From Paraphysomonas bandaiensis (taxonomy: Eukaryota > Protista > Chrysophyceae), in assembly GCA_965644295.1 (NCBI GenBank), contig CBFFRP010000421.1, positions 33,003-97,002 of the forward strand: DNA of 64,000 nt, written 5' to 3'. The notes beneath the pieces are model-generated. The model worked only from the letters and a program-made list of their open reading frames with translations. It ran no database searches and had not been told where the DNA came from. Numbering within the stretch: position 1 is the first letter of the stretch; every line of letters begins with the position of its first letter. This document shows positions 13,280 to 52,939 of this stretch, in pieces. A program made the position numbers and the translations under genes.

Positions 13280-13605
13280 ATGTATGTATGTATGTATGTA
13301 TGTATGTATGTATGTATGTATGTATGTATGTATGTATGTATGTATGTATGTATGTATGTATGTATGTATGTATGTATGTATGTATGTATGTATGTATGTA
13401 TGTATGTATGTATGTAGGTAGGTAGGTAGGTAGGTAGGTAGGTAGGTAGGTAGGTAGGTAGGTAGGTAGGTAGGTAGGTATGTATGTATGTATGTATGTA
13501 TGTATGTATGTATGTATGTATGTATGTATGTATGTATGTATGTATGTATGTATGTATGTATGTATGTATGTATGTATGTATGTATGTATGTATGTATGTA
13601 TGTAT
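13280..13605. repeat. Compound microsatellite (TATG)n-(TAGG)n-(TATG)n
   Basis: Directly visible tetranucleotide array between two divergent genes. Confidence 0.98.
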
Positions 13606-13661
13606 GGAGGCATTCAAATGTTAGTCTGTCATCTGTTGGTGCATTTAAGGTTATCAGTGCA

Positions 13662-26629: not shown

Positions 26630-26840
26630 TGTGGTTACTTGTGGGTTGATATGATGAGAGAGAACGACACTGTGCCTCTATGAGTGCATGTCTAGATGGT
26701 GTAAGCAACACTGCGCTGTACACTGCTGTACATGGATGAGGATAGAAGTGATACATACACCCACACACAACACTCCTCGTTCATTGGCTAATGACACATA
26801 CACTTCGCCTACCTGCAGTACCTATACATACATCCATGCG

Positions 26841-27135
26841 TACATACATACATACATACATACATACATACATACATACATACATACATACATACATACA
26901 TACATACATACATACATACATACATACATACATACATACATACATACATACATACATACATACATACATACATACATACATACATACATACATACATACA
27001 TACGTACATACATACATACATACATACATACATACATACATACATACATACATACATACATACATACATACATACATACATACATACATACATACATACA
27101 TACATACATACATACATACATACATACATACATAC
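26841..27135. repeat. (TACA)n microsatellite, ~295 bp
   Basis: Directly visible between two divergent genes. Confidence 0.98.
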
Positions 27136-27180
27136 AGGTACATACAGGTACATACAGGTACAGCAGGGTATCTTAAGGAT

Positions 27181-29401: not shown

Positions 29402-30264
29402 TTATCCCCATTTTGTCTTAAAAATGCTTTTTTTTGACTTGATTTTGTCTCAACAGGGCGCTCAGCATATCAGCACCGGGTAAATATAGACATTCAACTT
29501 CAATGTTCGGTTCAACAGAAGCTCACTTCTATCTTCGTTATGATAATGACAGTCGTATGTATGTGATTTCATTATAGTACACTATTATAGAGAAACCACA
29601 ATCATGAGCGAAACACCAAGAGCAGATAATCTAACTCCAAGTTATATTCCATCCTTCGACTGCTGTATAAGATCACAACGATGTCAGTGCAAGTGATCTG
29701 TCTTCATATCCAGGACTTCGAAACAACTTCAAGAACACTACAGGAGAGTTTAAGTACCATATCTGATGCTATATAGGTGGTTAGGAGCAGTGGCACCCAG
29801 TTCTTTCAGGGTTTGATCCATATCGTGCTTTTCAAGATGTTGTGTGTCTCATATCATACACACATCATTCGATCAGGTGCACTTGCAGAGGTAAAGCCTG
29901 CTGTATATAAATGTGATGATGATGCTAATTAAGGAAATAAGAAGCCTCTCTTTCACCTTCAACTGTTCACATTTATCATCACACTTACAGTATACATATC
30001 ATTGATTTGAAACTATATGAGTTCTCATTTGTGTTCTTAATGTTAATCAGGGAACATCTATTTCTTTATACAGCAAGCATGCTACAAATAGCTATACAAT
30101 CTAATATTAACTTTTCAACGTCATGAGGATAAGCTACAATTTAGCCTAGGGATATGGAGTATCGTCCCATGTCTAAATTTTAAAACTCGGGCTTTTCGCC
30201 CTCGTTTCAAAATTTTGAGCGCGGGACGATATAGCCTCCTTATTGCACATGGTTAAATATAACT
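29402..30264 (+). repeat. Dispersed ~860-bp non-coding repeat, copy B
   Basis: Direct near-identical copy of 22891-23752 with scattered SNPs and small indels. Confidence 0.9.
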
Positions 30265-30837
30265 CTATATACCAAAAATAGTGTGACTAGGAAACAGTGA
30301 GGTCAAATGTCTATATTCTCTTGGTGCTAATAAGAGCGCTCTGTGGGATAATTTCAGTGAATTACAATTTACAAAAAAACGTACATTCCAATGAAAACTA
30401 CAGTACTAACTATATAACATCCGAGCGCACACAGCCATATACTGGTGATAATTCTTATAGTTCTGTAGATATAGAAAATACATGAAAAAACTACAAGATC
30501 AAATATGAAATATACGACACACAGCCATAAACTGGTGGTAACTTTTATAGTTCTGTAGGTGTAGAGAATAAATGAAAAAACTACAATTTTGAAATCTGAA
30601 ATATACATTGACAGGTGTAATACACAGTGAAATGTTCGCAGATACAAAACTGAAAAACAAGTGAAAAAAAACTAGGAAATTTCGCCATGGTCAGGGCAAA
30701 TAAATAAACGAACTTTAAATCATACATACATACCATTTGATGATCATACACACAGTTATTGGACTTTTTCCTGTTTCAAACCAATAAGTGTATGCTTTGT
30801 TGAAGTGAAACCACAGCGATGCGTAAAATATAAAAAA

Positions 30838-33800
30838 CTAGAACATTTCCGGGTCAAGACCAACTTTGTTGTTGCAATTGATACGTTGAAAAAAATTCCT
30901 GCATACGTCACTCATAGATGTAAGAAGATGCCATATTCTCGCTCGGCGCTGTACTATATCTAGCATAGAGTCTAGCTCAAGTAGAGTCGCATCTAGAATA
31001 GGTGGAAGTGGACCGATATCATCATCGGAACTAACTGCACCCGCACACTGCTTCGCCAATTTTACCGCCCTTGTAACGATAGTTGCAACCTTTGATAGCC
31101 CCCCCCAGCGTGTTGACTTCCGAATGGCTAATTTTAAATACGGAATAGCCCCACTGACTTCTTTTCGAGATAAATATTGCTCCGCAATAACACAGGCCCA
31201 GTAGTATGATTGACTTTTGTGGGAGAGTAGAGGGCTCTTTGCGTAATGATGGCATATACTGCACACAAGTTCCTGTTCAATAATACTTTGACAACATAAA
31301 TTATAAAATTACCAGATCTCATAGCAAGGCCATTCTGTGGGATGTATGGCGCGTAGCGCATCTGCAACTCGCGCATGCACAAGCCCCGCGTCGCTACAAT
31401 CATTAATTACACATGGATAGAACATGCGCATATACCTACCTTTGTGGCACCAATATGTAAACATTTCTGCGTATGAGTGAGCTAGTAAAACAATAAAAGC
31501 CTGTTGTTACAGCCAGGAGGAAACCCTTCTCACCAAGAACATCGAGACATGAATGCAACTGAGGAATTATCGATTGTGGCAATACAGAAGCTAATACATG
31601 AAAAGAGAAGTATTCTCCTATAATGCTCGATGTTTTCAGAACAACGCTCTCAGCGGATGTCAAATCGTCCATTAAACATGCAATCCAAGAGTTATCCTTC
31701 AGTCTCAATATAGTGTTTCCAATGTCTCTATCACTGTGTTCGACGTACTGCCGAAGCTTCCAAAGCAAAAAAGGGCATCCCTCAGTGACTTCAATGACGG
31801 TTTCGATCGTCCTATCTGGTACCCGCAATCCTGACTCGCTCTTAAATATTTTTTCAACGCTTTTCTTTGTCAAGGGCTTGAGGGTTAATATATTTTTCTT
31901 CGGTACGAACTCACTAAATGCCAGATATTCAGCCAAATGTCTAGCAATTACGAACAAAGAATAAAATTAAAGTAATAGTTATATGAATGTAATGCGCAAA
32001 CATTACCTGACGGGAACAGCTTCAAGTCGCTGATCATGTATGTAAACGGTGCGCGAACATGATTTCTTTTCGTCCAAGCGACTTTCTGCACTTTCTAAAT
32101 TCCGACGCTGTGAAAAATTCTCAACTTCTAAAGTAACTTGCTTCCTGCCAGTAACTCGAATTGTTAATATAATTAACGAAGAAGAAGCCAACGAGCAGAG
32201 TTGTGAGAATACACCCCAAGAATGAGAACACATAAAATGTGCGTCATCTAAACAGAGTATTGGTACACCTGTCCCTTCTACTAGCATGCGGTGCAAGAGT
32301 TTTGCAAGAATAGCGTACTCGCTGAAATGCTCTTCACCAAAAGAGTTTCCAGGTCTGCTCTGCGGACGCCTATCAGTGATGGAATGGGCTGTTAATTCTA
32401 ACTCCAGGGCATCACTCACTACAGATACCGCGTATTCAAAGTAATTGTTTGAGAAAATGAAATTTGTTGTCTTCAAAATGAATTCCTTCTTCTCTCTCAG
32501 ATTAATATGGCCATGAAACACTGCTAACATATCCACAACCTTTCGTACAACTGCATATGGTGCGTCATCTGCGACCGTCAATGGGACAAATACACAACTA
32601 GACAGATGTTTTAGGCGTATGTCCACTGGATTTCTCCCCAATTTAGCCAGCAGATGACGAATAAAGTAGCTCGCTGTCGCTGTTTTTCCTAATGATACAC
32701 GACAATGAGACATATATCTTTGATACATAACGTTGTATTTACCGGATCCGACAGTACCATGTATGAGAATTACATTCGAAAAACAATTTTCGTTGTCTCC
32801 AGAGGGAGAGGATATCTCTTTCAAATGAGAACAGTGATCATGACGTTGTATCTTTGACTCTGCATCTGAAACTATTTCATGCCGATCAGAATTCCAATTA
32901 AAATCTAGGGAGCGAAGCATTCGACGAATGTATCCCTCGATAACAATCAACGACCCGTTTCTAATATCTCTTACGTACGAGGCAGGTGGTACAGATCGCA
33001 TATAGCAGTGGTACTGCATGTCATCTGGAACGCCTTTCATGTGTAATGGTTCCGACAGGTAAGTTCCAGATGCTACAGAAAGTGGAAGTCTCTCAAAAGT
33101 CTCATCGTCCATCAAAATACGACCATTGGCTTTGCACATAAGGCGAGCCGCAAGATTCACAGACTTCCCAATGGCTACATAATCTCGTCTGCATACAGGC
33201 CCAACCACTCCACAAAACACGCTTCCAGTAGTTATACCAATGGATACAGTGTGAAGTTGAGCAAGTGATTCATTTTTCATCAATACCGCACAGCGGAGGG
33301 CTTTAGAGCAGTTGGAAGCATGAGTGGCAGTTGGTACCCCCCACAGACCGATCAACACACAGCCCTTATCATCAATAAGGAATTGTCGCAATAGCCCCCC
33401 ACATTCGTGTAGACACTTTTGCATGGCTAAGAAAAAAGGTTGCAGTGTATGTACATTGCTGAAAGTCTCTGAGTTGTAAGAGTCTAGGCGCAGAAACAAA
33501 GTAGTGACAGTTCTAATCTCCGCCAAACCGGAAAGGGTATTAGACAGAACGGCCTCCAGCACAGGCACCGGTACGCAGCCGAGTGCACGACGTGTGCTCA
33601 TCCCAACAGTTAGCCCCCCGTCTTCTATGTTCTCTGAAAGCGCTTCCGAGGTGGAATAAGGTGATGTGGATGAAGTCTACACAACAGTTCCTAAGTATTG
33701 TTCGAACCACTGATATTGTTAACACACACTTACCTGCCATGACCTTGAGTGCGTAGGTGACTCAAATGTACGACTTTTGTAGCCATTAACTTTTACAAAG

Positions 33801-34588
33801 CCTCCAGGTGGGAATGGCACCCCTGTAACTTCATTTGATACCTCATAGTATACATCTTGTGTCACTACGACCTCCTGTGCCAATGCTCTATCCAGACATC
33901 CCCCAAGTTCATCCATATTGTCACCATTAACTATATACGTATATTGATCTTGGTGGCCGCCAAGAAAAGAAAAACTCATTCGACCGTATGACACCGCCAC
34001 ATGCATACAAATGTCCTTGATTTGAATCTTTGATATGTGAAGCGCGCATTTGACAGCTTGATAGCAGCAACGATTCTTGCCGACGAAAGACGATTGCAGG
34101 AAAACGCACACGAGGGCATCACCAGCAAATGCAATAACTAGCAAAAAAGATTCACATGATCAAAAACTATGCATGGAATGTTTATAAATCTTACCTTGAC
34201 CACCAAAACTGCACACAGTCTGAACCAATTTTTCAAAAGAGTTGTTTATAAGCAGCCTAAGCTGGTCAAGTCCATCTGAACCCTTCGCACACAAAGCACT
34301 TGCCATAGCAGTGAAACCTGATATATCTGCTAACAAGCAGCATGCGGTAAAACTACAGTGGTTTGTACAACTAAAAGGGGGAGTAGTCAAGCAGGAGGGG
34401 ATAAATGAGAGACAACTCTCGGTATGATCCGAGTCAACCAGAGATTCAATGAGATGCCTATTCCGTCCCTCTTGTAAGTGTTTCTTTCGAGAGGAATCAT
34501 ACAGATTACTATGATCTTGTTTAAAGGGGTTATGGTATGTGTAGTAGGATACTGAGCGGTCAGATACTCCATCCATATCTCCTGGCAT
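30838..34588 (-). CDS. Soluble adenylyl cyclase (ADCY10/sAC)-like: tandem class III cyclase domains + STAND P-loop NTPase, multi-exon
   Basis: C1: LLADISGFT, FAGDAL. C2: RQFLIDDKGCVLIGLWGVP, SIGITTG, IGKSVNLAARLM. Walker A GTVGSG|KT after removing an in-frame intron; Walker B ILCLDDAH; TEGCPF. Confidence 0.85.
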
Positions 34589-35356
34589 CTGCTGTGATCA
34601 GGTTACAAGGAGATCCTACTATCCAGCCAGAGATATAGAGTGATCTTATATCGGCCTGGAGGAGGAAACAACTCTCTGTCAGTCACAGATATGACGTACA
34701 AAGGGGAGAATATGAACATCACAGTCGAGGCACCATCATCTTGAGAGATCTCATATATATGTACGGTATTATGACGAACGAGAAGATGAATAAGCAATAC
34801 GTACTTTACTATACATACATCTATAGAGAATCATACATACATACACATAGACAACAACTCCATCAAAAATCCGTCCAATATACATATTCGAAGTGATGAC
34901 GTGTTCACTTCACCAATACTTTCATATTCAATCTATATGATTGGATAATAATCTTCAATATAAAAAAAAAGTAGCTTTGAACTTTTTCACTGGTTTTGTA
35001 TGCCTAAATTTAGTACTCGATACAACAACTTGGATTTGACTATGAGTAGTGTGTGATATATGAACCTAGCTTCCTTGTTATTGTTGTGAGTTGATTGCTA
35101 ATCTGAAGTAAACCCACTTTCATAACTGTATGATGTGTGATTCAGGGGTATTTTGGAATATAATGATGGTAATTGTACACAAAAACTCTATATTTCTATC
35201 AGCATTTAGTGAGGAAAACTGAGGATTTTTCTCCACACGTACTTAAAAAACGAACTACGCACTGAACGGATAGAGGACATACATGGACATACAGTACGAA
35301 GCAGTGTCTCAACTACTTCATTCACCAGACCATTAAGAGCTGTGCTCTTTAATATA

Positions 35357-38300
35357 AGTCTAGTATAGTCTGTCTACTATAGTCTAGTATAGTCTGTCTA
35401 GTATAGTCTAGTATAGTCTAGTATAGTCTGTCTACTATAGTCTAGTATAGTCTGTCTAGTATAGTCTAGTATAGTCTAGTATAGTCTGTCTACTATAGTC
35501 TAGTATAGTCTGTCTAGTATAGTCTAGTATAGTCTGTCTAGTATAGTCTGTCTACTATAGTCTAGTATAGTCTGTCTAGTATAGTCTAGTATAGTCTGTC
35601 TAGTATAGTCTAGTATAGTCTGTCTAGTATAGTCTGTCTACTATAGTCTAGTATAGTCTGTCTAGTATAGTCTAGTATAGTCTGTCTAGTATAGTCTAGT
35701 ATAGTCTGTCTAGTATAGTCTAGTATAGTCTGTCTAGTATAGTCTACTATAGTCTGTCTAGTATAGTCTACTATAGTCTGTCTAGTATAGTCTAGTATAG
35801 TCTAGTATAGTCTGTCTACTATAGTCTAGTATAGTCTACTATAGTCTGTCTAGTATAGTCACTCTACTATAGTCTAGTATAGTCTACTATAGTCTAGTAT
35901 AGTCTCTCTACTATAGTCTAGTATAGTCTCTCTACTATAGTCTATTATAGTCTACTATAGTCTAGTATAGTCTGTCTACTATAGTCTAGTATAATTGAAA
36001 ATCTGATTATTAAGAAGCGCAAGCTTGTGCGTTGCCGCGACCAACCTAACGACTCGCGCGACACTATGCATAACATGACTCTCATCTAGTTACTATTGCA
36101 TGCACCGACAAGTGCTCAACTATACAACACGATTTAGTTAGCTACATGGGCATACGACGAGTTGCGTGTTTAAGCCGGATCATACGCTCCTGCCCAATCT
36201 ACTTGTCCTAACACAAACAACTTGCGGTCGGTGTCTTCGGCATATGTCTCCTGTATATGCGGCAGATCTTTAGGGCCCTCTTCAAGGTGGTGTTCACAGC
36301 AGCAGGTAGTCTGGAAGGGAGAATAAAGTAGCTCTATAGCGCCGGGTCCTCCCACGGTCACGAAGCGGTCTCACTGGTGCAATTTTGCACACTGACGCAT
36401 GAAACAGACATCTACCAAAATCTGTTACAAATTCAAGCTGACTCCAATGTCTTCCCTCCATTGTGTGCACTCGTCCAGCACATGCATCCACCTTGCACTC
36501 TTCTCCCGAGTGACTTACACTAGTAGGAAACCGTGCACCTTCCCCGCTCGGATGAAAACCTACTAAGCAAGAATAACATAAAAGCACCACAAATGTACCT
36601 GACACTGCTTGGAGAACAGTGCCAGAGCCTTGATATAATCTCAATGACCTGGGTCAGGAGAAACCAAGACTAGGCAGTAGACGTGTGAGAAGACATGACA
36701 GGTCTAATCACATCATTGCCATTGCCATGCATCCATGAGGAAAGTTTGACGCATTACCTCGGTCATTGGCCACACAGATACCGAATAATGTGAACTCATA
36801 CTCAGCATCAATCACTCAAAGCAAACGCAGGGAGCAAGCAGAATGTTGATATACCTGACATCTGCTGACTTCAGGTGTTTTGAGTTCTTAAGGTGAACAT
36901 CCCGGATGCTTAACTTCAGCAGGCAGCCCAATACCCCGGTTACCCTTCTGGTGGGCCCTGTCCCGGATGCCCTTGAGGTGGGCCCATTCCCGGATGCCTG
37001 TTTATTCGTCAGGGCACAAAGACGTCTACACAAGTGACACTTATTAGTGTCCCTTGTACCACACAAGCATTTGGCTATGAGTGGGCAGAACAATATCTGC
37101 TGACTATGTTTGCGGCTCACGTTAGTTTCCCAGAGAGAATCTCTCCGGTACTTATCCCCCAGAACACCACGAAAAGGTGCGAGTCCGACTTTGTTGAGGG
37201 TATAGTCTAGTATAGTCTGTCTAGTATAGTCTAGTATAGTCTGTCTAGTATAGTCTAGTATAGTCTGTCTAGTATAGTCTGTCTAGTATAGTCTAGTATA
37301 GTCTGTCTAGTATAGTCTAGTATAGTCTGTCTAGTATAGTCTAGTATAGTCTGTCTAGTATAGTCTGTCTACTATAGTCTAGTATAATTGAAAATCTGAT
37401 TATTAAGAAGCGCAAGCTTGTGCGTTGCCGCGACCAACCTAACAACTCGCGCGACACTATGCATAACATGACTCTCATCTAGTTACTATTGCATGCACCG
37501 ACAAGTGCTCAACTATACAACACGATTTAGTTAGCTACATGGGCATACGACGAGTTGCGTGTTTAAGCCGGATCATACGCTCCTGCCCAATCTACTTGTC
37601 CTAACACAAACAACTTGCGGTCGGTGTCTTCGGCATATGTCTCCTGTATATGCGGCAGATCTTTAGGGCCCTCTTCAAGGTGGTGTTCACAGCAGCAGGT
37701 AGTCTGGAAGGGAGAATAAAGTAGCTCTATAGCGCCGGGTCCTCCCACGGTCACGAAGCGGTCTCACTGGTGCAATTTTGCACACTGACGCATGAAACAG
37801 ACATCTACCAAAATCTGTTACAAATTCAAGCTGACTCCAATGTCTTCCCTCCATTGTGTGCACTCGTCCAGCACATGCATCCACCTTGCACTCTTCTCCC
37901 GAGTGACTTACACTAGTAGGAAACCGTGCACCTTCCCCGCTCGGATGAAAACCTACTAAGCAAGAATAACATAAAAGCACCACAAATGTACCTGACACTG
38001 CTTGGAGAACAGTGCCAGAGCCTTGATATAATCTCAATGACCTGGGTCAGGAGAAACCAAGACTAGGCAGTAGACGTGTGAGAAGACATGACAGGTCTAA
38101 TCACATCATTGCCATTGCCATGCATCCATGAGGAAAGTTTGACGCATTACCTCGGTCATTGGCCACACAGATACCGAATAATGTGAACTCATACTCAGCA
38201 TCAATCACTCAAAGCAAACGCAGGGAGCAAGCAGAATGTTGATATACCTGACATCTGCTGACTTCAGGTGTTTTGAGTTCTTAAGGTGAACATCCCGGAT

Positions 38301-40880
38301 GCTTAACTTCAGCAGGCAGCCCAATACCCCGGTTACCCTTCTGGTGGGCCCTGTCCCGGATGCCCTTGAGGTGGGCCCATTCCCGGATGCCTGTTTATTC
38401 GTCAGGGCACAAAGACGTCTACACAAGTGACACTTATTAGTGTCCCTTGTACCACACAAGCATTTGGCTATGAGTGGGCAGAACAATATCTGCTGACTAT
38501 GTTTGCGGCTCACGTTAGTTTCCCAGAGAGAATCTCTCCGGTACTTATCCCCCAGAACACCACGAAAAGGTGCGAGTCCGACTTTGTTGAGGGTATAGTC
38601 TAGTATAGTCTGTCTAGTATAGTCTAGTATAGTCTGTCTAGTATAGTCTAGTATAGTCTGTCTAGTATAGTCTAGTATAGTCTGTCTAGTATAGTCTGTC
38701 TAGTATAGTCTAGTATAGTCTGTCTAGTATAGTCTAGTATAGTCTGTCTAGTATAGTCTGTCTACTATAGTCTAGTATAGTCTACTATAGTCTAGTATAG
38801 TCTACTATAGTCTAGTATAGTCTGTCTACTATAGTCTAGTATAGTCTGTCTACTATAGTCTAGTATAGTCTACTATAGTCTAGTATAGTCACTCTACTAT
38901 AGTCTAGTATAGTCTACTATAGTCTAGTATAGTCTACTATAGTCTACTATAGTCTGTCTAGTATAGTCTACTATAGTCTAGTATAGTCTATTATAGTCTA
39001 GTATAGTCTACTATAGTCTAGTATAGTCACTCTACTATAGTCTAGTATAGTCACTCTACTATAGTCTAGTATAGTCTACTATAGTCTAGTATAGTCTCTC
39101 TACTATAGTCTATTATAGTCTACTATAGTCTAGTATAGTCTGTCTACTATGGTCTAGTATAATTGAAAATCTGATTATTAAGAAGCGCAAGCTTGTGCGT
39201 TGCCGCGACCAACCTAACAACTCGCGCGACACTATGCATAACATGACTCTCATCTAGTTACTATTGCATGCACCGACAAGTGCTCAACTATACAACACGA
39301 TTTAGTTAGCTACATGGGCATACGACGAGTTGCGTGTTTAAGCCGGATCATACGCTCCTGCCCAATCTACTTGTCCTAACACAAACAACTTGCGGTCGGT
39401 GTCTTCGGCATATGTCTCCTGTATATGCGGCAGATCTTTAGGGCCCTCTTCAAGGTGGTGTTCACAGCAGCAGGTAGTCTGGAAGGGAGAATAAAGTAGC
39501 TCTATAGCGCCGGGTCCTCCCACGGTCACGAAGCGGTCTCACTGGTGCAATTTTGCACACTGACGCATGAAACAGACATCTACCAAAATCTGTTACAAAT
39601 TCAAGCTGACTCCAATGTCTTCCCTCCATTGTGTGCACTCGTCCAGCACATGCATCCACCTTGCACTCTTCTCCCGAGTGACTTACACTAGTAGGAAACC
39701 GTGCACCTTCCCCGCTCGGATGAAAACCTACTAAGCAAGAATAACATAAAAGCACCACAAATGTACCTGACACTGCTTGGAGAACAGTGCCAGAGCCTTG
39801 ATATAATCTCAATGACCTGGGTCAGGAGAAACCAAGACTAGGCAGTAGACGTGTGAGAAGACATGACAGGTCTAATCACATCATTGCCATTGCCATGCAT
39901 CCATGAGGAAAGTTTGACGCATTACCTCGGTCATTGGCCACACAGATACCGAATAATGTGAACTCATACTCAGCATCAATCACTCAAAGCAAACGCAGGG
40001 AGCAAGCAGAATGTTGATATACCTGACATCTGCTGACTTCAGGTGTTTTGAGTTCTTAAGGTAAACATCCCGGATGCTTAACTTCAGCAGGCAGCCCAAT
40101 ACCCCGGTTACCCTTCTGGTGGGCCCTGTCCCGGATGCCCTTGAGGTGGGCCCATTCCCGGATGCCTGTTTATTCGTCAGGGCACAAAGACGTCTACACA
40201 AGTGACACTTATTAGTGTCCCTTGTACCACACAAGCATTTGGCTATGAGTGGGCAGAACAATATCTGCTGACTATGTTTGCGGCTCACGTTAGTTTCCCA
40301 GAGAGAATCTCTCCGGTACTTATCCCCCAGAACACCACGAAAAGGTGCGAGTCCGACTTTGTTGAGGGTATAGTCTAGTATAGTCTGTCTAGTATAGTCT
40401 AGTATAGTCTGTCTAGTATAGTCTAGTATAGTCTGTCTAGTATAGTCTAGTATAGTCTGTCTAGTATAGTCTGTCTAGTATAGTCTGTCTAGTATAGTCT
40501 AGTATAGTCTAGTATAGTCTGTCTAGTATAGTCTAGTATAGTCTACTATAGTCTAGTATAGTCTACTATAGTCTAGTATAGTCTGTCTACTATAGTCTAG
40601 TATAGTCTGTCTACTATAGTCTAGTATAGTCTACTATAGTCTAGTATAGTCTACTATAGTCTAGTATAGTCTACTATAGTCTAGTATAGTCTACTATAGT
40701 CTACTATAGTCTAGTATAGTCTGTCTACTATAGTCTAGTATAGTCTACTATAGTCTAGTATAGTCACTCTACTATAGTCTAGTATAGTCTACTATAGTCT
40801 AGTATAGTCTCTCTACTATAGTCTAGTATAGTCACTCTACTATAGTCTATTATAGTCTAGTATAGTCTACTATAGTCTAG
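35357..40880. repeat. Composite tandem array: 4 satellite blocks alternating with 3 near-identical 1207-bp cassettes
   Basis: Satellite built from TAGTA/TAGTC/TGTC/TACTA at ~35357-35993, 37201-37386, 38594-39161 and 40369-40880. Cassettes at 35994-37200, 37387-38593 and 39162-40368, with the same ORFs recurring at offsets 1393 and 1775. Confidence 0.97.
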
Positions 40881-41098
40881 CATACACATGCATGCGTTTG
40901 CTGCAAATTAACGACAAATCTTGTTATATGCTAAATTTCACCTAATCTTATAGTTCAGTACAGTACCATCTAGTTCTCATTATTGCTTGCGCATGTAACA
41001 GAAAAGCAATAACTGTACCCCAATGAATGAACTGATTATTACTCAACAGCCCAATAGTACTCCAGCTACACACTCTACTACTCTAGTCTCTAGTACCA

Positions 41099-41430
41099 CT
41101 ACTTATTACCTGACACTAGCCGGGAGTCTCTGGAGCTTATAGCCATTTCTGATGCATTTCTCTTTTTACCACGACTGAGAGCATTGCTCAGTAAGTCGAG
41201 CATATCCACTACCTCACCTGCATGGTCTTCTTTTTCCATTTCAAACACGGTTTCATGCTGTAAATCAGCACATGAATCAACGACGTACTCGGACTGAACT
41301 TTCACTGCGCATTTCAAATGCTTTACTCCTCTCCAATACTAATAGGCATTCTGCTTGCTTGCGTCATCTTCAATAACCTCGAGACATACACTCTCCGCTT
41401 TTCTACGGACACGGGAACCCACTTGTCACG
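41099..41430 (-). pseudogene. Degraded coding-like fragment of unknown origin
   Basis: ORF 41099..41317 extends upstream past an in-frame stop (…EVIEDDASKQNAY*YWRGVKHLK…). No recognisable domain. Confidence 0.25.
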
Positions 41431-41555
41431 CTCATTTTGTCGATAATGAGGCATAAACCTTTACAATAGCTCTCCCGCATAGTAATGAAGCTTGCTATAC
41501 GAACTCACAGTTAATAATGGCACGATTCACAGTGTATTCGCTCTCTCAAATTCCT

Positions 41556-41830
41556 TCTGTGGGATTAAGTCGATCCAGCAGAATATGTCGATCCAGCAAA
41601 CAAATCGACCTTTTTTCGTTATTTCTCTGAAATATATTCGTCAAAAAACAACATGCATCAAAAAAACCTGGATTTTTTTGCTGGATCGACATATTCTGCT
41701 GGATCTTATTCCCACAGACAGAATTCCAAGAAATCACAATCTAAGTGCGTGGCATTCGCTACTTCAAAATTGAAGTTCTGTCTGTGGGAATAAGTCGATC
41801 CACCGGAATAAGTCGATCCAGCAAAAAAAT
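41556..41830. repeat. Cluster of three transposon-end repeats in alternating orientation (AAGTCGATCCA(G/C) direct repeats)
   Basis: TCTGTGGGA(T/A)TAAGTCGATCCA... at 41556 (+), ending at 41718 (-), and at 41781 (+), directly upstream of the transposase ORF. Confidence 0.8.
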
Positions 41831-41988
41831 CAAAAACGACAATTTGATGAAAAACATACCAATTCGAATGGAATTTACAGTCAATAACTGTCATATATTT
41901 CACATTTATGTCATAACCATTATAGTATCGATGTGGAAAATCTGAGCATATCACAAGTGTATGCCTCCTGTCATGTAATCAAAATCTG

Positions 41989-43395
41989 GTGCATATTCTT
42001 CTTAAAATAATACACTTCTGCAGGCAAAATACTCCCGAGGTACCCTCCATCAGGTCAAGTGATAGCAGCGGCGATGAACCGCCAATAATAGCGTCACATG
42101 ATAATATACCTGTCATATTTGTTCCCACTGTAACATCCTTAAGGTTTTATTCCAAAATATCTTATCGGGACTTGAAGGATCACTTGTTTACAAAAGAAGA
42201 AAAAACATGGTTGGTGGAAGAATATTTAAAAACTTCTGACAACCTATTACCGCCTTCGCACCCACACTATGAAAACAATTGTAAAGTTTATCACTCACAA
42301 CGCGAACTGGCCGATCGATATAAAATATCGCGGTCCAAATTTCAACGTTGGGTGAGATCAAAAACTTCGGACATACCAATCAAAAATGATTGGGAAAACG
42401 TGGGAAGGAATCCTGATATGACTGCAAAGGATGTGGCACGTTTCACCAAAATTATTGTAGAAAGCGAGATAAGCTTGCATCCAATTAACCAGTCTGCCAA
42501 GACAAAGCTGCTGGTGGATCTTAGGGTGGAATCAGGATGTAGGCGGAAGAGACAGTTGGAGACTCATCAGCTCTGTTTGGATCCTGACTCGAAAACCCAA
42601 AAAAAATATATGGAGCTTGCTGGTGCTACAAACCTCACAGGACAGCACCTTACTGAAGCAAGGAGGAAAGCTTGCCAAGATCCACGTATGAGCTATTCGT
42701 GGTATCTGATGTGTGAAGCATTTTCTGCCACCCTTGCTCCTGAAAGGAAGTGGAATTTCGATGGGTCTACTTTTCAGATAATGGATATGGGTAAAGGAGG
42801 TGTCTATCTACACTACCGAGGTACTAATGGTAGTCAGGCTAGCCCAATTCCGAAAGCAATGAAGGGTAAAGTAAGCACTTGTCCCGAGTTTCAGGACGTC
42901 TATTTAAAGTGGATGGCAATGAGCAACGCTGCTGGGGAGTCTAGTCCAATGGTAATTGTAGCTGCCATAAAAGATATGCCAGATGGGGCATTTGAAGCTC
43001 TCCCGATTGTGGGGCTTTCCAACACATCTGCTTTGGGTGAGGTTGGCTATTTCGTGTGTTGCTCTACACGCTCTGGAAATGAAGCTTTATGGAAATGGTA
43101 TTATGAAACTATTGTCGTTGGAACCATTGTTAGAGCCAATATCGTGAATGACCATCTGAAAAATCCGGATGGTAGTCCAATGCGTAATTTTTTGTCCACT
43201 GACGACGGCGAGGCCACAATTCTGAAGCATGCGTTTGACCAACGAATTCAAGAGTTATTCAAAGGCGCTGGTATCGATTATGCAAAGGGGGGGGCCAGTA
43301 CGACGTCAATTCATCAACCTCTCGACCGATCAGTTGTCTTCCGCGATCATGATACTTACTGCAGTGTCTATCGCTATATGTGTCCGAAAAGTTAA
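41989..43395 (+). mobile_element. pogo/Tc2-like (DDE_1) DNA transposase, probably 3'-truncated
   Basis: HTH RELADRYKISRSKFQRWVR; KWNFDGSTF (first D); FLSTDDG (second D); STTSIHQPLD (third D). The ORF ends shortly after QPLD. Confidence 0.75.
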
Positions 43396-43786
43396 TGCTT
43401 GTGCTACACACCACTAACTTAAACTTACTGGAGGTTAACATCGGCAGGGTGTCCATAGCTCCGAAAAAAACTTCTTCCATTATTTTTATATAATATCTTT
43501 ACTCCAAACTTCTGTTATGGTTTTGAAACTAAGGGTGAATATTTAGTCTCTGTTACAATAACAGAATAGTCATGAATTTATTCCTAAATACACGAATCTT
43601 ACACTCCATAAATATACATATATGTTTATAATTTATTTTTGTTTCCTTGAAGAAAATCTGTGTTACTTCTGTTAACTTATAACTTATATATGCCCCCCAT
43701 TACATTGGTGCTGAACATGAAATGTATACGGAGGTTTCATATTTCATACACGCCATCCGCGCCCAAGGACATCAACAATAGTTATC

Positions 43787-46700
43787 CTAGTTACTTCCTA
43801 GCAAGCACCAATCATATTTGTACCAGAACTCTCCAGTTTCTTCCTCCGTTAGGCCAGTCAAAAATTTACTGATATCAAACGTGCAGTCATTCTTCTCAAG
43901 TACCATAGACACATCGCCACTAGATAATTCACAAGAACTGCCAGAAGCAAGAAGGGTTCGAATTATCTGACCTGCAAAAGAATAGAGTAAACATATAGAT
44001 TCTACCATTATATACAAGTTTCACTGTCCGGTAGTAGGTGTGCATTGTGAATACCAATCACATATCTACAAGTTTTAGGGAAAAATTTAATTTTGGCCCT
44101 TTTTGGCCCTCGGCCCGCTAGGGCCCTCGGCCCGCATTTGGCCCTCTACTACAACTAACAATAATAACAATAATTCTTAATTAAAAACACACACAACACA
44201 CACTACAACCACAAGCAACAATAACGCACAAAGCAAAGGGCAGTATTACGCACAAAGCAAAGGGTCAAATTTAGCAAGAGTTATTAATATCTTAAGCAAG
44301 AGCAACTTTATACCAAAACATTTTTCGGAGCTGGGGGCTCCCCACGCTTCGACTCTACGAGCCGGCGTCCACTGCCCCCAGGCCCCCGCCCCTAAACAAC
44401 GCCGGGGCCGGCCCCACCGGCCCTATTCCGGCGTTTGGCGCCGGTCTGAGCCCTGCCGGCGGCAACACAGCATGTCTCAATCTCCTCGGTGAAAGCACAG
44501 TCTTCGGCTGTCACTGTAGACTCCTTGCCACATCCAGTGTATTTCACTATCTCCTCAATTGAAATACAATCATCAGTGGGTACATCGACAACATATCCAT
44601 TCTGCAGTCGGCACTGCTCGCGATAGCCAACGATGGACCCCTCGTAAAATCCAACTCTCACCACCTCGTACATGCACCCATCCTCAGGATCATAGTGGCT
44701 CTTCCCAATCAAAAACTTGTATTGGTTGAGCTGCGCAAACTTAGTCCTTTGGACTGACCTGTCCATTTCAAATGCAGCGTAGTCCTCTGGCAATGTGAAT
44801 TGCTGGAATGGCAGATGTTTCGGCCGGGATGCATGACCCCTGAGAATTTTGTTTCGAAGTTCGACGTATTCTTGACTTAGCTTCCGAATAGTACTCACAT
44901 ATAACACCACGGAAGGATGCGCAGTGGGAAAAGCCTCGTTCAGCTTTCTGTTAAACCTTTCCAGTGGATTGTTGGTTCTATTAATCAAGCGGGATGTTGA
45001 TGACTCGTCTGTTACAATGCCATGCACATTCCAATCATTAGGATCGGATCCAGTTACAGGCTTGCCCTCAAAGTTCCGTTTGATAGCATTCATCAGACCC
45101 TTCTCGAAATCCACTGAGCCATTGATGATCTCCATCATGAAATCTGTTGAGGCCTTACTCAAATAAAGAGCCATGGAATACACTTCTTCAAACTTCGATT
45201 GCAGCAATATATAAAATACAGGAATGTATAGGGACGAGGCGTAGTCATATATCATAATTACTAGACACTGAGAAAATCCCTTTGGCACACATTTAAAAGT
45301 ACAGTCTATAAACAGATGGACCGGACCACCCTTTACAATATTGATTAAATCAGGATGTGCAAAGCCAATTATCTTCTGCATCTGATTGCTAACATTGATT
45401 GAAGTATTGAACTGTAAAAATAGTCTCTCGTCGTCATCAGCACAGTTCACAAGCGGATACGACGATATAATTCCTTCCCAATCATTGAACTCTAAACGTC
45501 TACACTGATACACCAAAGCTTTGAGTTTCGACGTTTCGAGATATCTATATGGCATTCCTACCGAAATAAGCAAAAGAAAATGAAGTGAAAACAGCAAAAA
45601 GAAAAAAAATATCAATTTTCTCACCGAGCTGCTTATATTTCGCTCGCGTTGTTTCCGCAACTTCATTTGCAATCGCAATGGAGGACTTCGAAACATCTTT
45701 CAACGCCATTGCTTCACAAAGTTGTTTCATTTCACCACTTGCGTCATATACACCTTTACAAAACGACGACCTCTCCTTGGAATTATCATCAGATGTTGGT
45801 GAATCTGAAGGCAATATAAAGATGGCGGCACCACATTTGTGCTCCTCTTTCCCCTTTGAAATTATCAGTTTTTCATCAGATTCTTCTGCTTGCTCGTGAA
45901 CAAGAATTGTCAATTTAGCTGGACAGCCACATGTTCTTCCTTTCCGGTGTTTTGAGCACCGATAATAACCCTTCAAATTTCCTAAATATATGGATCAGTG
46001 GCTTACTGATAGAGAATATATTATACCGAACCATCTTGAAGCCTCTTCCTCTGCTTGATAGTGTATCTGAAACCTTCCCACTGAAAAGTTGTAGGGAGAT
46101 CATCGCTATTACAACTATCTTTTCTCCCTGATTCTTCTGAATTAGAATCATGCATTATTAATCGCCTGCTTGATGACAAAATTATTAATGAATTTGTATT
46201 AAGTTTTCAAAAAGTCGAAATTAAAAACTAATCACATTAGTTTTTTCAAAACTCGAAATCTTTAAAAGACAATAACTGAAATAATATAACAAATCAAAAT
46301 CTTCAGGAGGCAAAAACTGAAAAAAATTAATTTTAGAGGGCCCGCGGGGGGCCGCGGGCCCGCGAGGGCCGAGGGCCCTGGCGGGCCGCAAAAAAACCTT
46401 ATCAGTTTTAGACGTACCACTCTCACAGTTCGATACGTTATCAATATACCACGTGAGTGCACCAGTGTCTTCATCCTCTTCAAAAAAACAAGTGCCAGCC
46501 CTTTCAATGCCATGCACAACATATGTTTGATCCAAACATGATGCTGCTGACGCACTTTCACCATAGATATGAGCATCATAATCTATCTTAGGGTACTTCT
46601 TGGCTTCGGCCACTTTGGCAAACCACACATCACCCATGCGAACACAATCACCTGGTCACCATGTCAATTAAGATTAAATTTCTTTTGTACAATAATTGTG

Positions 46701-51295: not shown

Positions 51296-52939
51296 ATGAA
51301 CACTGTGAGTGCAATGGAGTCATCCAGACAGAGTGAGGAGGAGTGTAAGACTCTGGATGAACTCAAATGTGCGTTACAGTCAGATGCAGCTGTATCTGTT
51401 AAATCAATCTGGTTTAATGACTCATTTCTTAATCTATTGAAGCCGAATCTATTGTGTGCGTCAAATTTGAGAGCTTTAGATCTTAGTAAAACTCAAGTGA
51501 GTGATGCTGGTGCTCAATTGCTGTGCCACATTCTCGACAAACTTGAGACGCTTGCACTCAATAATACGAATGTTGGTGACGAAGGAGCTACATACATAGT
51601 CGACAGCTTAAAATTGAACCGCTATTTACAACGGTTGGATCTCTCTTGTACCAGAATTACTGATGCCTCGTGCTCTGCTTTTACAGATTTAATATTGAAC
51701 CACGGCAAAACATTCATCGCCCTCGAAGTGCATTCCAGTCATACTTCGTCTGAAGCTGAGGGTGTTCTAGCTAATGCTCTTGCACTCCATCCTAGAGAAC
51801 CGTTTTCTAAAGAAAATTGGGATATGCCACCATGGAATACATGGGCTTTTCAACATATTCCTCATTTTCTTAATTGCGATATTGTTCCTAAAGGAGGATA
51901 TATAAATCCTCTAAAAGAGAGTTATCGCGACTTTTCTGCGCACAAGTTCGAATTTATGGGAGAATTAGTATCTTTGGATTGTGTGTTGAGGGAGACATAC
52001 ACAGATGCCTTCATCGTTCTCCATCGCGGTGAAATAATCGTGGAGAAATACTTCAATGGCATGACACAGTGGACTCAACACCTAAGTCAATCAGTGGCCA
52101 AGTCAATTGCTGGTTTGTTATGCGGCATATTGGTTGGTCAAGGAGTACTGGATCCGGCAGAGGTTTTAACGACGTATCTGCCGGAATTGAGCTGCACTGC
52201 CTACAGTGGCGCAACACTACAACACGTACTGGATATGACATCCGGAGTTGCTTACTGTGAGATGTACACAAGTCCCACCTCAGACATTGCTATGACAGAA
52301 TATGCCTCTGGATGGAAGATACCTCCGCAGGGTGTCACTCCTCCCGGGACAGTGTGGGAGCAAATATTGTCTCTCACTGAACAGGAGTGTGACCATGGAA
52401 GTAGATGGAGTTACAGATCCATTGAAACAGATGTCTTAGGCATGGTAATGGAACGGGCAACAGGATCGACTATGTCTCAGCTTGTTTCTGAACTGCTATG
52501 GCAGCCCATGTGTGCCGAATGTGATGCGTACTATACAGTAGACGCTTCGGGGTATGCATGCGCGGATGGTGGGTTCAATGCGACCCTGAGAGATTACGCC
52601 AGAATTGGTTATCTCTTGCAGAATGGTGGAAGAGTGAATGACACACAAATTGTTCCAGAGTCATGGATAGAAAGTACTAGGTGTGGAAATCACGAAATGT
52701 TTGCATGCAAAAATATATCTGGACTCCCAGATGGGGCATACAAAAATCAGTTTTGGTTACGGGATTCAGAGTCAAGATCTATAATGTGTTTAGGTATATT
52801 CGGCCAGATGATTTACACAGATTTTAACAATGAAATGGTTATCGTCAAGCTTTCGAGTTGGCCTAGTGCTCTTGATGCTTCATTGAAAATTGGAACGTTT
52901 GAACTTGTCGATCAACTGGGTAAGATTTTGGGGGTGTAG
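51296..52939 (+). CDS. Intronless fusion of LRR domain and class C beta-lactamase / NylB (6-aminohexanoate-dimer hydrolase)-like serine hydrolase
   Basis: LRRs (LRALDLSKTQVSDAGA, LALNNTNVGDEGA, LQRLDLSCTRITD), then NWDMPPWNTWAFQHI, SVAK (SxxK), LDMTSG, YRS, RDYARIG, GIFGQ. Confidence 0.88.
   Translation: MNTVSAMESSRQSEEECKTLDELKCALQSDAAVSVKSIWFNDSFLNLLKPNLLCASNLRALDLSKTQVSDAGAQLLCHILDKLETLALNNTNVGDEGATYIVDSLKLNRYLQRLDLSCTRITDASCSAFTDLILNHGKTFIALEVHSSHTSSEAEGVLANALALHPREPFSKENWDMPPWNTWAFQHIPHFLNCDIVPKGGYINPLKESYRDFSAHKFEFMGELVSLDCVLRETYTDAFIVLHRGEIIVEKYFNGMTQWTQHLSQSVAKSIAGLLCGILVGQGVLDPAEVLTTYLPELSCTAYSGATLQHVLDMTSGVAYCEMYTSPTSDIAMTEYASGWKIPPQGVTPPGTVWEQILSLTEQECDHGSRWSYRSIETDVLGMVMERATGSTMSQLVSELLWQPMCAECDAYYTVDASGYACADGGFNATLRDYARIGYLLQNGGRVNDTQIVPESWIESTRCGNHEMFACKNISGLPDGAYKNQFWLRDSESRSIMCLGIFGQMIYTDFNNEMVIVKLSSWPSALDASLKIGTFELVDQLGKILGV

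Follow-up and report, generated by a model that had tools for sequence, protein, structure and literature searches.

A 64,000-nt stretch of Paraphysomonas bandaiensis contig CBFFRP010000421.1 (C421), referred to here as the window, raises the question of how three 1207-bp copies of one sequence, which we call the cassette, came to lie head-to-tail between four blocks of a single satellite (637, 186, 568 and 512 bp, respectively; Table 1). An earlier note on this DNA had described the layout and offered two explanations for it: an undescribed mobile element that targets the satellite, or one insertion amplified on the spot, either by unequal crossover or by rolling-circle replication, for which the satellite would be used as a pseudo-long terminal repeat (LTR). 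Based on our analysis of the window and of the assembly to which it belongs (62.5 Mb in 669 contigs), in which the coordinates of the cassettes and blocks were confirmed, we consider it very probable that a single retroposon inserted into a minisatellite and that satellite-mediated unequal exchange subsequently raised the number of cassettes to three. The locus is the product of ordinary DNA amplification of a retroposon insert; no new mechanism is at work in it, and no system that targets satellites.

Shared variants, spacers and target site of the array

The three local cassettes differ from one another at exactly two sites, as the earlier note had observed: position 58, where copy 1 has a G and the other two copies an A, and position 902, where an A sets copy 3 apart. 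Copy 2 departs from the family consensus solely by an A at position 1023 (38409). When the local cassettes were aligned with 19 copies from outside the locus (22 copies in all), this A was present in 3/3 local cassettes and position 1023 was a C in 19/19 non-local copies. Across the genome, a 31-mer carrying the A occurs four times, three of them at the locus and one on contig C398, and the same 31-mer with C occurs 280 times. The C398 site is absent both among the listed sites of a cassette-specific 23-mer (a list without 13 two-mismatch sites) and among the best matches of a cassette-specific DNA query, and it probably belongs to a member of a different subfamily that underwent a parallel change.

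The satellite blocks are likewise related to one another. An exact prefix of 80-118 bp is common to blocks 2, 3 and 4. An identical 34-bp suffix closes blocks 1 and 2, and the suffix of block 3 is alike save for one A-to-G change in its last unit. Zones and rare variants follow the same left-to-right order in blocks 1, 3 and 4; in block 1, 24-nt units of the TGTC type are succeeded by 20-nt units of the TAC/TAG type and these by rare ACTC, TCTC and TATTATAGTC variants, and the right end of block 3 repeats the rare-variant order of block 1. The junctions, which are as the earlier note described them, are identical for all three local cassettes on both sides. Because the cassettes share the A at position 1023 and the same junctions, and because the internal spacers are unequal in length (186 vs 568 bp) and retain the same order of variants, we favor one insertion followed by local amplification. 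Unequal exchange between satellite to the right of one cassette and satellite to the left of another would be expected to yield internal spacers that are composed of the prefix of the right block and the suffix of the left block and that vary in length.

In the course of events that we propose, one cassette would have inserted by target-primed reverse transcription into a minisatellite found only at this locus, giving rise to a 14-bp target-site duplication. Satellite on both sides of the insert would then have provided the homology for out-of-register exchange, be it unequal crossover between sister chromatids or homologues or an equivalent template switch during replication, and the unit of cassette plus satellite would have been duplicated until three cassettes and four satellite blocks were in place. 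Repeated expansion and contraction would leave spacers that are unequal yet mutually homologous. The exact recombination mechanism of the amplification is one that we infer.

We next consider whether the satellite itself attracts the cassette. The satellite is a locus-specific minisatellite with a 10-bp period: all 20 occurrences of a satellite 34-mer in the assembly are at the locus, as are 89 of the 90 occurrences of a 20-mer dimer (at most one mismatch), the other one being an unrelated microsatellite. As a consequence of this restriction, just one of ~111 cassette loci is satellite-resident. With 113 copies in 62.5 Mb, the number of insertions expected in 1.9 kb is ~0.003. The earlier note had raised the question of whether other copies always sit in this satellite at TATA; in our search of the assembly they do not, as the DNA surrounding 19/19 non-local copies is unrelated and their target sites share no common motif. 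Satellite targeting was rejected on these grounds, with 0/19 other copies in satellite and the satellite present nowhere else. Of the proposed 4-bp target-site duplication, the duplication stands, but its length is probably greater. Given the 10-bp period of the satellite, a duplication of either 4 or 14 bp is arithmetically possible, and we prefer 14 bp because an exact 14-mer, TATAGTCTAGTATA, flanks the cassette (its right copy is at 37201-37214) and because duplications in the family range from 11 to 15 bp; both observations disfavor 4 bp.

The cassette as a member of a retroposon family

A DNA search of the assembly returned full-length matches to the cassette on many contigs at 97-100% identity. 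Genome-wide, 113 sites were counted for a cassette-specific 23-mer when two mismatches were allowed (control, 0), and a 25-mer from the end of the tail occurs 1378 times with up to three mismatches (control, 0). The ~400-bp cassette tail, with ~1,400 genomic occurrences, is common to a family of ~512-bp elements whose 5' end was counted at least 344 times. Positions 884-1207 of the cassette share 97% identity with the 3' portion of such an element (e.g. L028:8741-9252), which has flanking duplications of its own and a 5' end that starts (TAT)ATTGAAAGTC. Older relatives, 67-91% identical, share cassette sequence from approximately position 806. Judged from these alignments, the cassette is made of three parts: the first ~50 nt form a head with homology to that of the family, the next ~750 nt are peculiar to the cassette, and the rest is the shared tail, which begins at position 884 in the comparison with the ~512-bp family and near position 806 in that with the older relatives.

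The ends of the dispersed copies bear on how the cassette moves. An exact flanking direct repeat of 11-15 bp, whose sequence varies by locus, was detected by script in 18/19 non-local copies, and the nineteenth (L018) has an 11-bp repeat that is visible by eye and offset by one base. Apart from this one-base offset in L018, the TTGAGGG junction is flush in the non-local copies, and the ATTGAAA junction carries 1-3 extra bases in 7/19 of them. Duplications of variable length, together with a 3' junction that is exact and a 5' junction that is ragged, make up the classical footprint of target-primed reverse transcription, in which a long interspersed nuclear element (LINE)-type endonuclease and reverse transcriptase (RT) are employed. 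By its sequence features, the cassette is best classed as a young, non-coding and non-autonomous retroposon of the non-LTR type with ~113 copies, and it presumably moves by way of an RNA intermediate. A 1.2-kb subfamily is hereby added to the abundant tail-sharing retroposon system of this genome and, because its ~113 copies are very young, this system has been active very recently.

In keeping with the non-coding assignment, no Pfam domain matched the open reading frames (ORFs) of any of the cassette copies at E <= 1, and the longest such ORF encodes 116 aa. The cassette has no terminal inverted repeats, no poly-A and no 3' microsatellite; the absence of inverted repeats, poly-A and a protein domain agrees with what the earlier note reported. 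No tRNA was found in the cassette with ARAGORN and no RNA family with Rfam, where small-RNA matches were absent at E <= 1 to 10, and neither the cassette nor the head of the ~512-bp family shows any likeness to tRNA, 5S RNA, 7SL RNA or a ribozyme in either program. A few local hairpins could form in the tail, which as a whole folds with no unusual stability (z = -0.98) and in which no compensatory changes were seen.

Other classes of mobile element were considered and rejected. The cassette termini are ATTG...AGGG and not the TG...CA of an LTR retrotransposon or solo LTR, and its duplications measure 11-15 bp rather than a fixed 4-6 bp. Helitrons insert between A and T without a target duplication and have TC...CTRR ends and a 3' hairpin; the cassette has duplications, and its ends differ from TC...CTRR. 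A Penelope-like element or retrozyme is disfavored by the absence of a hammerhead or other ribozyme family from window positions 30000-46000 (Rfam, E <= 1). A canonical short interspersed nuclear element (SINE) was rejected as ARAGORN and Rfam revealed no head derived from an RNA polymerase III (Pol III) small RNA and as TTTT runs lie internally, in the cassette at positions 390 and 885 and in the ~512-bp family at position 14. Internal TTTT runs argue against transcription by Pol III. With no small-RNA-like head and with TTTT runs in both families, we describe the cassette as SINE-like rather than as a canonical Pol III SINE. It resembles LINE-dependent SINE-like retroposons in being non-coding, in having many near-identical dispersed copies with duplications of 11-15 bp, in an apparent combination of a precise 3' junction with a variable 5' junction, and in forming subfamilies that have different heads and one conserved tail. 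Unlike them, it is long for a SINE at 1.2 kb, has no tRNA-, 5S- or 7SL-like head, lacks poly-A or a 3' microsatellite, and has a partner LINE that is only a candidate.

As to that partner, many contigs contain uninterrupted frames of 1,700-3,700 aa in which an APE endonuclease domain and an RT domain are separated by 1.3-2.1 kb, and one of these APE+RT LINEs may mobilize the cassette in trans through the shared 3' tail. A comparison of coordinates placed a tail downstream of an RT match only on C15, at a distance of 2.9 kb, and this proximity is compatible with chance because the other checkable members of the RT group are without the tail. The giant LINE of C644 is followed downstream by the beginning of L021, in which no tail was found, and the ORFs that adjoin tails in the inspected loci are host genes. 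A profile search with PF14529 gave no match anywhere, controls included, and is uninformative.

One locus joins cassette and LINE sequence directly. L023 (G000:C397:193086-200616, minus strand, ~301-2620) holds a 2.3-kb chimera with a flanking duplication of 12-13 bp, in which cassette positions 1-899 are followed by 1082 bp of LINE-related sequence and then by the shared tail. The 1082-bp segment is related to the CCHC (CX2CX8HX4C) C-terminal region of APE+RT LINEs. We considered L023 as the 3' end of a LINE and rejected it: the genome contains its LINE-to-tail junction only once, so that L023 does not prove the identity of the partner and looks like a one-off template switch or nested event. 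Copies of the LINE-related segment that are 95% identical also occur on C537, C354, C338 and C69, at the same distance from all four contig starts (~1.1-4.4 kb), where they adjoin ~2 kb of 160-270-bp tandem repeats and may represent a subtelomeric repeat.

Copies of the cassette are often found inside other mobile elements. Those at L013:1501-2707, L020:1501-2711 and L021:7923-9131 sit in a LINE-like RT ORF, in the end of an older relative and in a 512-type head, respectively. Paired cassette-specific sites were observed at G000:C148:52042-54354, where they are 1102 bp apart, and at G000:C485:40706-42291, where they are 1166 bp apart, which suggests nested or partial tandem copies.

Weighing the explanations for the locus

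Several observations weigh against a single retroposon insertion that was amplified through its flanking satellite. From end to end, block 4 is similar to block 1, which requires several rounds of exchange or a satellite that was duplicated beforehand; the likeness suggests that there were several rounds of expansion and contraction or that the ancestral satellite was already internally duplicated. The copy number of the array comes from one assembly. With respect to the retroposon itself, the sense strand that we assign to the cassette is one we infer from the asymmetry of its junctions and from the excess of tails (1378) over counted heads (113 + 344), and clean 5'-truncated copies with duplications, seen only tentatively, were hard to document among older copies. 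Seven copies (C423, C370, C297, C144, C529, C12 and C430) align only to ~1097-1117 of 1207, which could be real 3' truncation or could be due to the alignment stopping at an indel-rich stretch. Lastly, the junction in L023 is the sole join of a LINE fragment to the tail that was found, and the LINEs that may supply the tail are candidates.

A more novel reading, to which we would give a small chance, holds that the locus is a complex satellite caught at birth in a protist, in which retroposon and minisatellite together serve as a new higher-order repeat of ~1.4-1.8 kb whose copy number is still changing. If this were true, the array would be destabilized by the very event in which a minisatellite receives a mobile element. 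According to a weaker variant, the ~750-nt cassette-specific segment may be captured host sequence whose dosage matters.

Somewhat less likely is an assembly artefact, in which the true locus would have one or two cassettes and reads or haplotypes would have been chained through the satellite. Satellites are hard to assemble and, with a single-copy left flank, neither an allelic contig for comparison nor an empty site was found in the assembly. Against this, private substitutions tell the copies apart, the spacers differ both in length and in the order of their units, and the array lies inside a long contig, between flanks that are unique.

We think it quite improbable that an extrachromosomal circle of cassette plus satellite was replicated by rolling circle to a concatemer and reintegrated. 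Units that are head-to-tail and nearly identical would fit this route, and it is discussed for tandem transposable elements in PMC5932611, but a concatemer predicts equal spacers. Those found here, of 186 and 568 bp, are also made up of different units, which disfavors a simple rolling-circle concatemer, and an array that lies exactly inside the satellite, of which the genome has a single copy, does not call for reintegration. As to the second explanation offered by the earlier note, the private substitution, the junctions and the spacers bear out an insertion amplified by unequal crossover with the satellite as a pseudo-LTR, and the unequal spacers speak against its rolling-circle version.

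Three independent insertions by a satellite-recognizing retroelement, always in the same phase, would account for the identical junctions on both sides of the three cassettes and for n cassettes lying between n+1 blocks, but we regard this as extremely unlikely given that 0/19 other copies are in satellite and their target sites share no motif, that the satellite is restricted to the locus, that the A at position 1023 common to the three local copies is in no other cassette-type copy found, that the spacers are homologous to each other and are not successive pieces of one array, and that the probability of three such random insertions is ~1e-8. The same holds for the comparison with known repeat- or site-specific elements. 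R1 and R2 in ribosomal DNA and the Dong/R4-, Mino-, Kibi- and Waldo-type elements that target microsatellites are non-LTR families that occupy their target repeat at most or all loci. The locus resembles them in having a retroelement within a tandem repeat with reproducible junctions; unlike them, the cassette family is in the repeat at 1 of ~111 loci, which is explained by local duplication.

A single insertion amplified by satellite-mediated exchange has closer counterparts among tandem arrays of transposable elements that arise by unequal exchange, for which a framework is provided by McGurk and Barbash (2018; PMC5932611). Among the models in that paper, recombination between flanking repeats comes closest, with a host satellite here taking the place of LTRs. 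A double-insertion route to tandems is also described there for Drosophila elements, and it is disfavored at this locus because the spacers are much longer than a duplication. As in LTR-mediated tandems and the R1 array, head-to-tail element copies are separated by repeats that give homology; unlike in those cases, the homology belongs to a host minisatellite and not to the element's own LTRs or to the duplication of a double insertion, and there are three units only. By analogy with this framework, the locus may be viewed as an early stage of a complex satellite.

Taken together, these comparisons correct the reading of the cassette as a repeat-seeking element, in that a routine retroposon insertion was, very probably, locally amplified. 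The array had been put forward as the best candidate for a novel system in the window, a rating that does not hold for a cassette belonging to an abundant family of LINE-type non-autonomous retroposons. What the locus offers instead is a tidy, datable case of flanking tandem repeats turning one insertion into an array, as an early step to a complex satellite.

Feature coordinates and surroundings of the array

The features of the array and the parts of its first cassette are collected in Table 1.

Table 1. Features of the cassette-satellite array, in window positions.
Feature	Position	Strand	Remarks
Satellite block 1	35357-35993 (637 bp)	.	units TAGTATAGTC and variants
Left copy of the putative 14-bp target-site duplication TATAGTCTAGTATA	35980-35993	+	exact direct repeat
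Cassette copy 1	35994-37200	+	private G at position 58 (36051); locally shared A at 1023 (37016)
Cassette 5' end	35994-36045	+	outermost ~20 nt (ATTGAAA...) plus a 16-nt module, both with homology to the ~512-bp sister family at its head
Cassette-specific middle part (~750 nt)	36046-36798	+	without coding or RNA-family signal; fold not more stable than expected (z = 0.04)
Cassette 3' tail	36799-37200	+	ends TTGAGGG
Satellite block 2	37201-37386 (186 bp)	.	first 80 nt as in block 4; last 34 nt as in block 1
Cassette copy 2	37387-38593	+	equals the inferred local ancestor
Satellite block 3	38594-39161 (568 bp)	.	first 118 nt as in block 4
Cassette copy 3	39162-40368	+	private A at position 902 (40063); shared A at 1023 (40184)
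Satellite block 4	40369-40880 (512 bp)	.	zone order as in blocks 1 and 3; then unique DNA

The surroundings of the array within the window are gene-dense, with long, intron-poor ORFs of eukaryotic type that include SWIRM, TPR and cyclase genes and a fusion, at 51296-52939, in which LRR repeats are joined to a beta-lactamase-family domain (Pfam). Tetranucleotide microsatellites are present at 13280-13606, as (ATGT)82, and at 26824-27156, as (ATAC)82. At 41549-41831 are two adjoining palindromic units that look like foldbacks or miniature inverted-repeat transposable elements, whose arms of 25-45 nt are 91-92% complementary and which gave weak, sub-threshold Rfam matches to plant MIR families.

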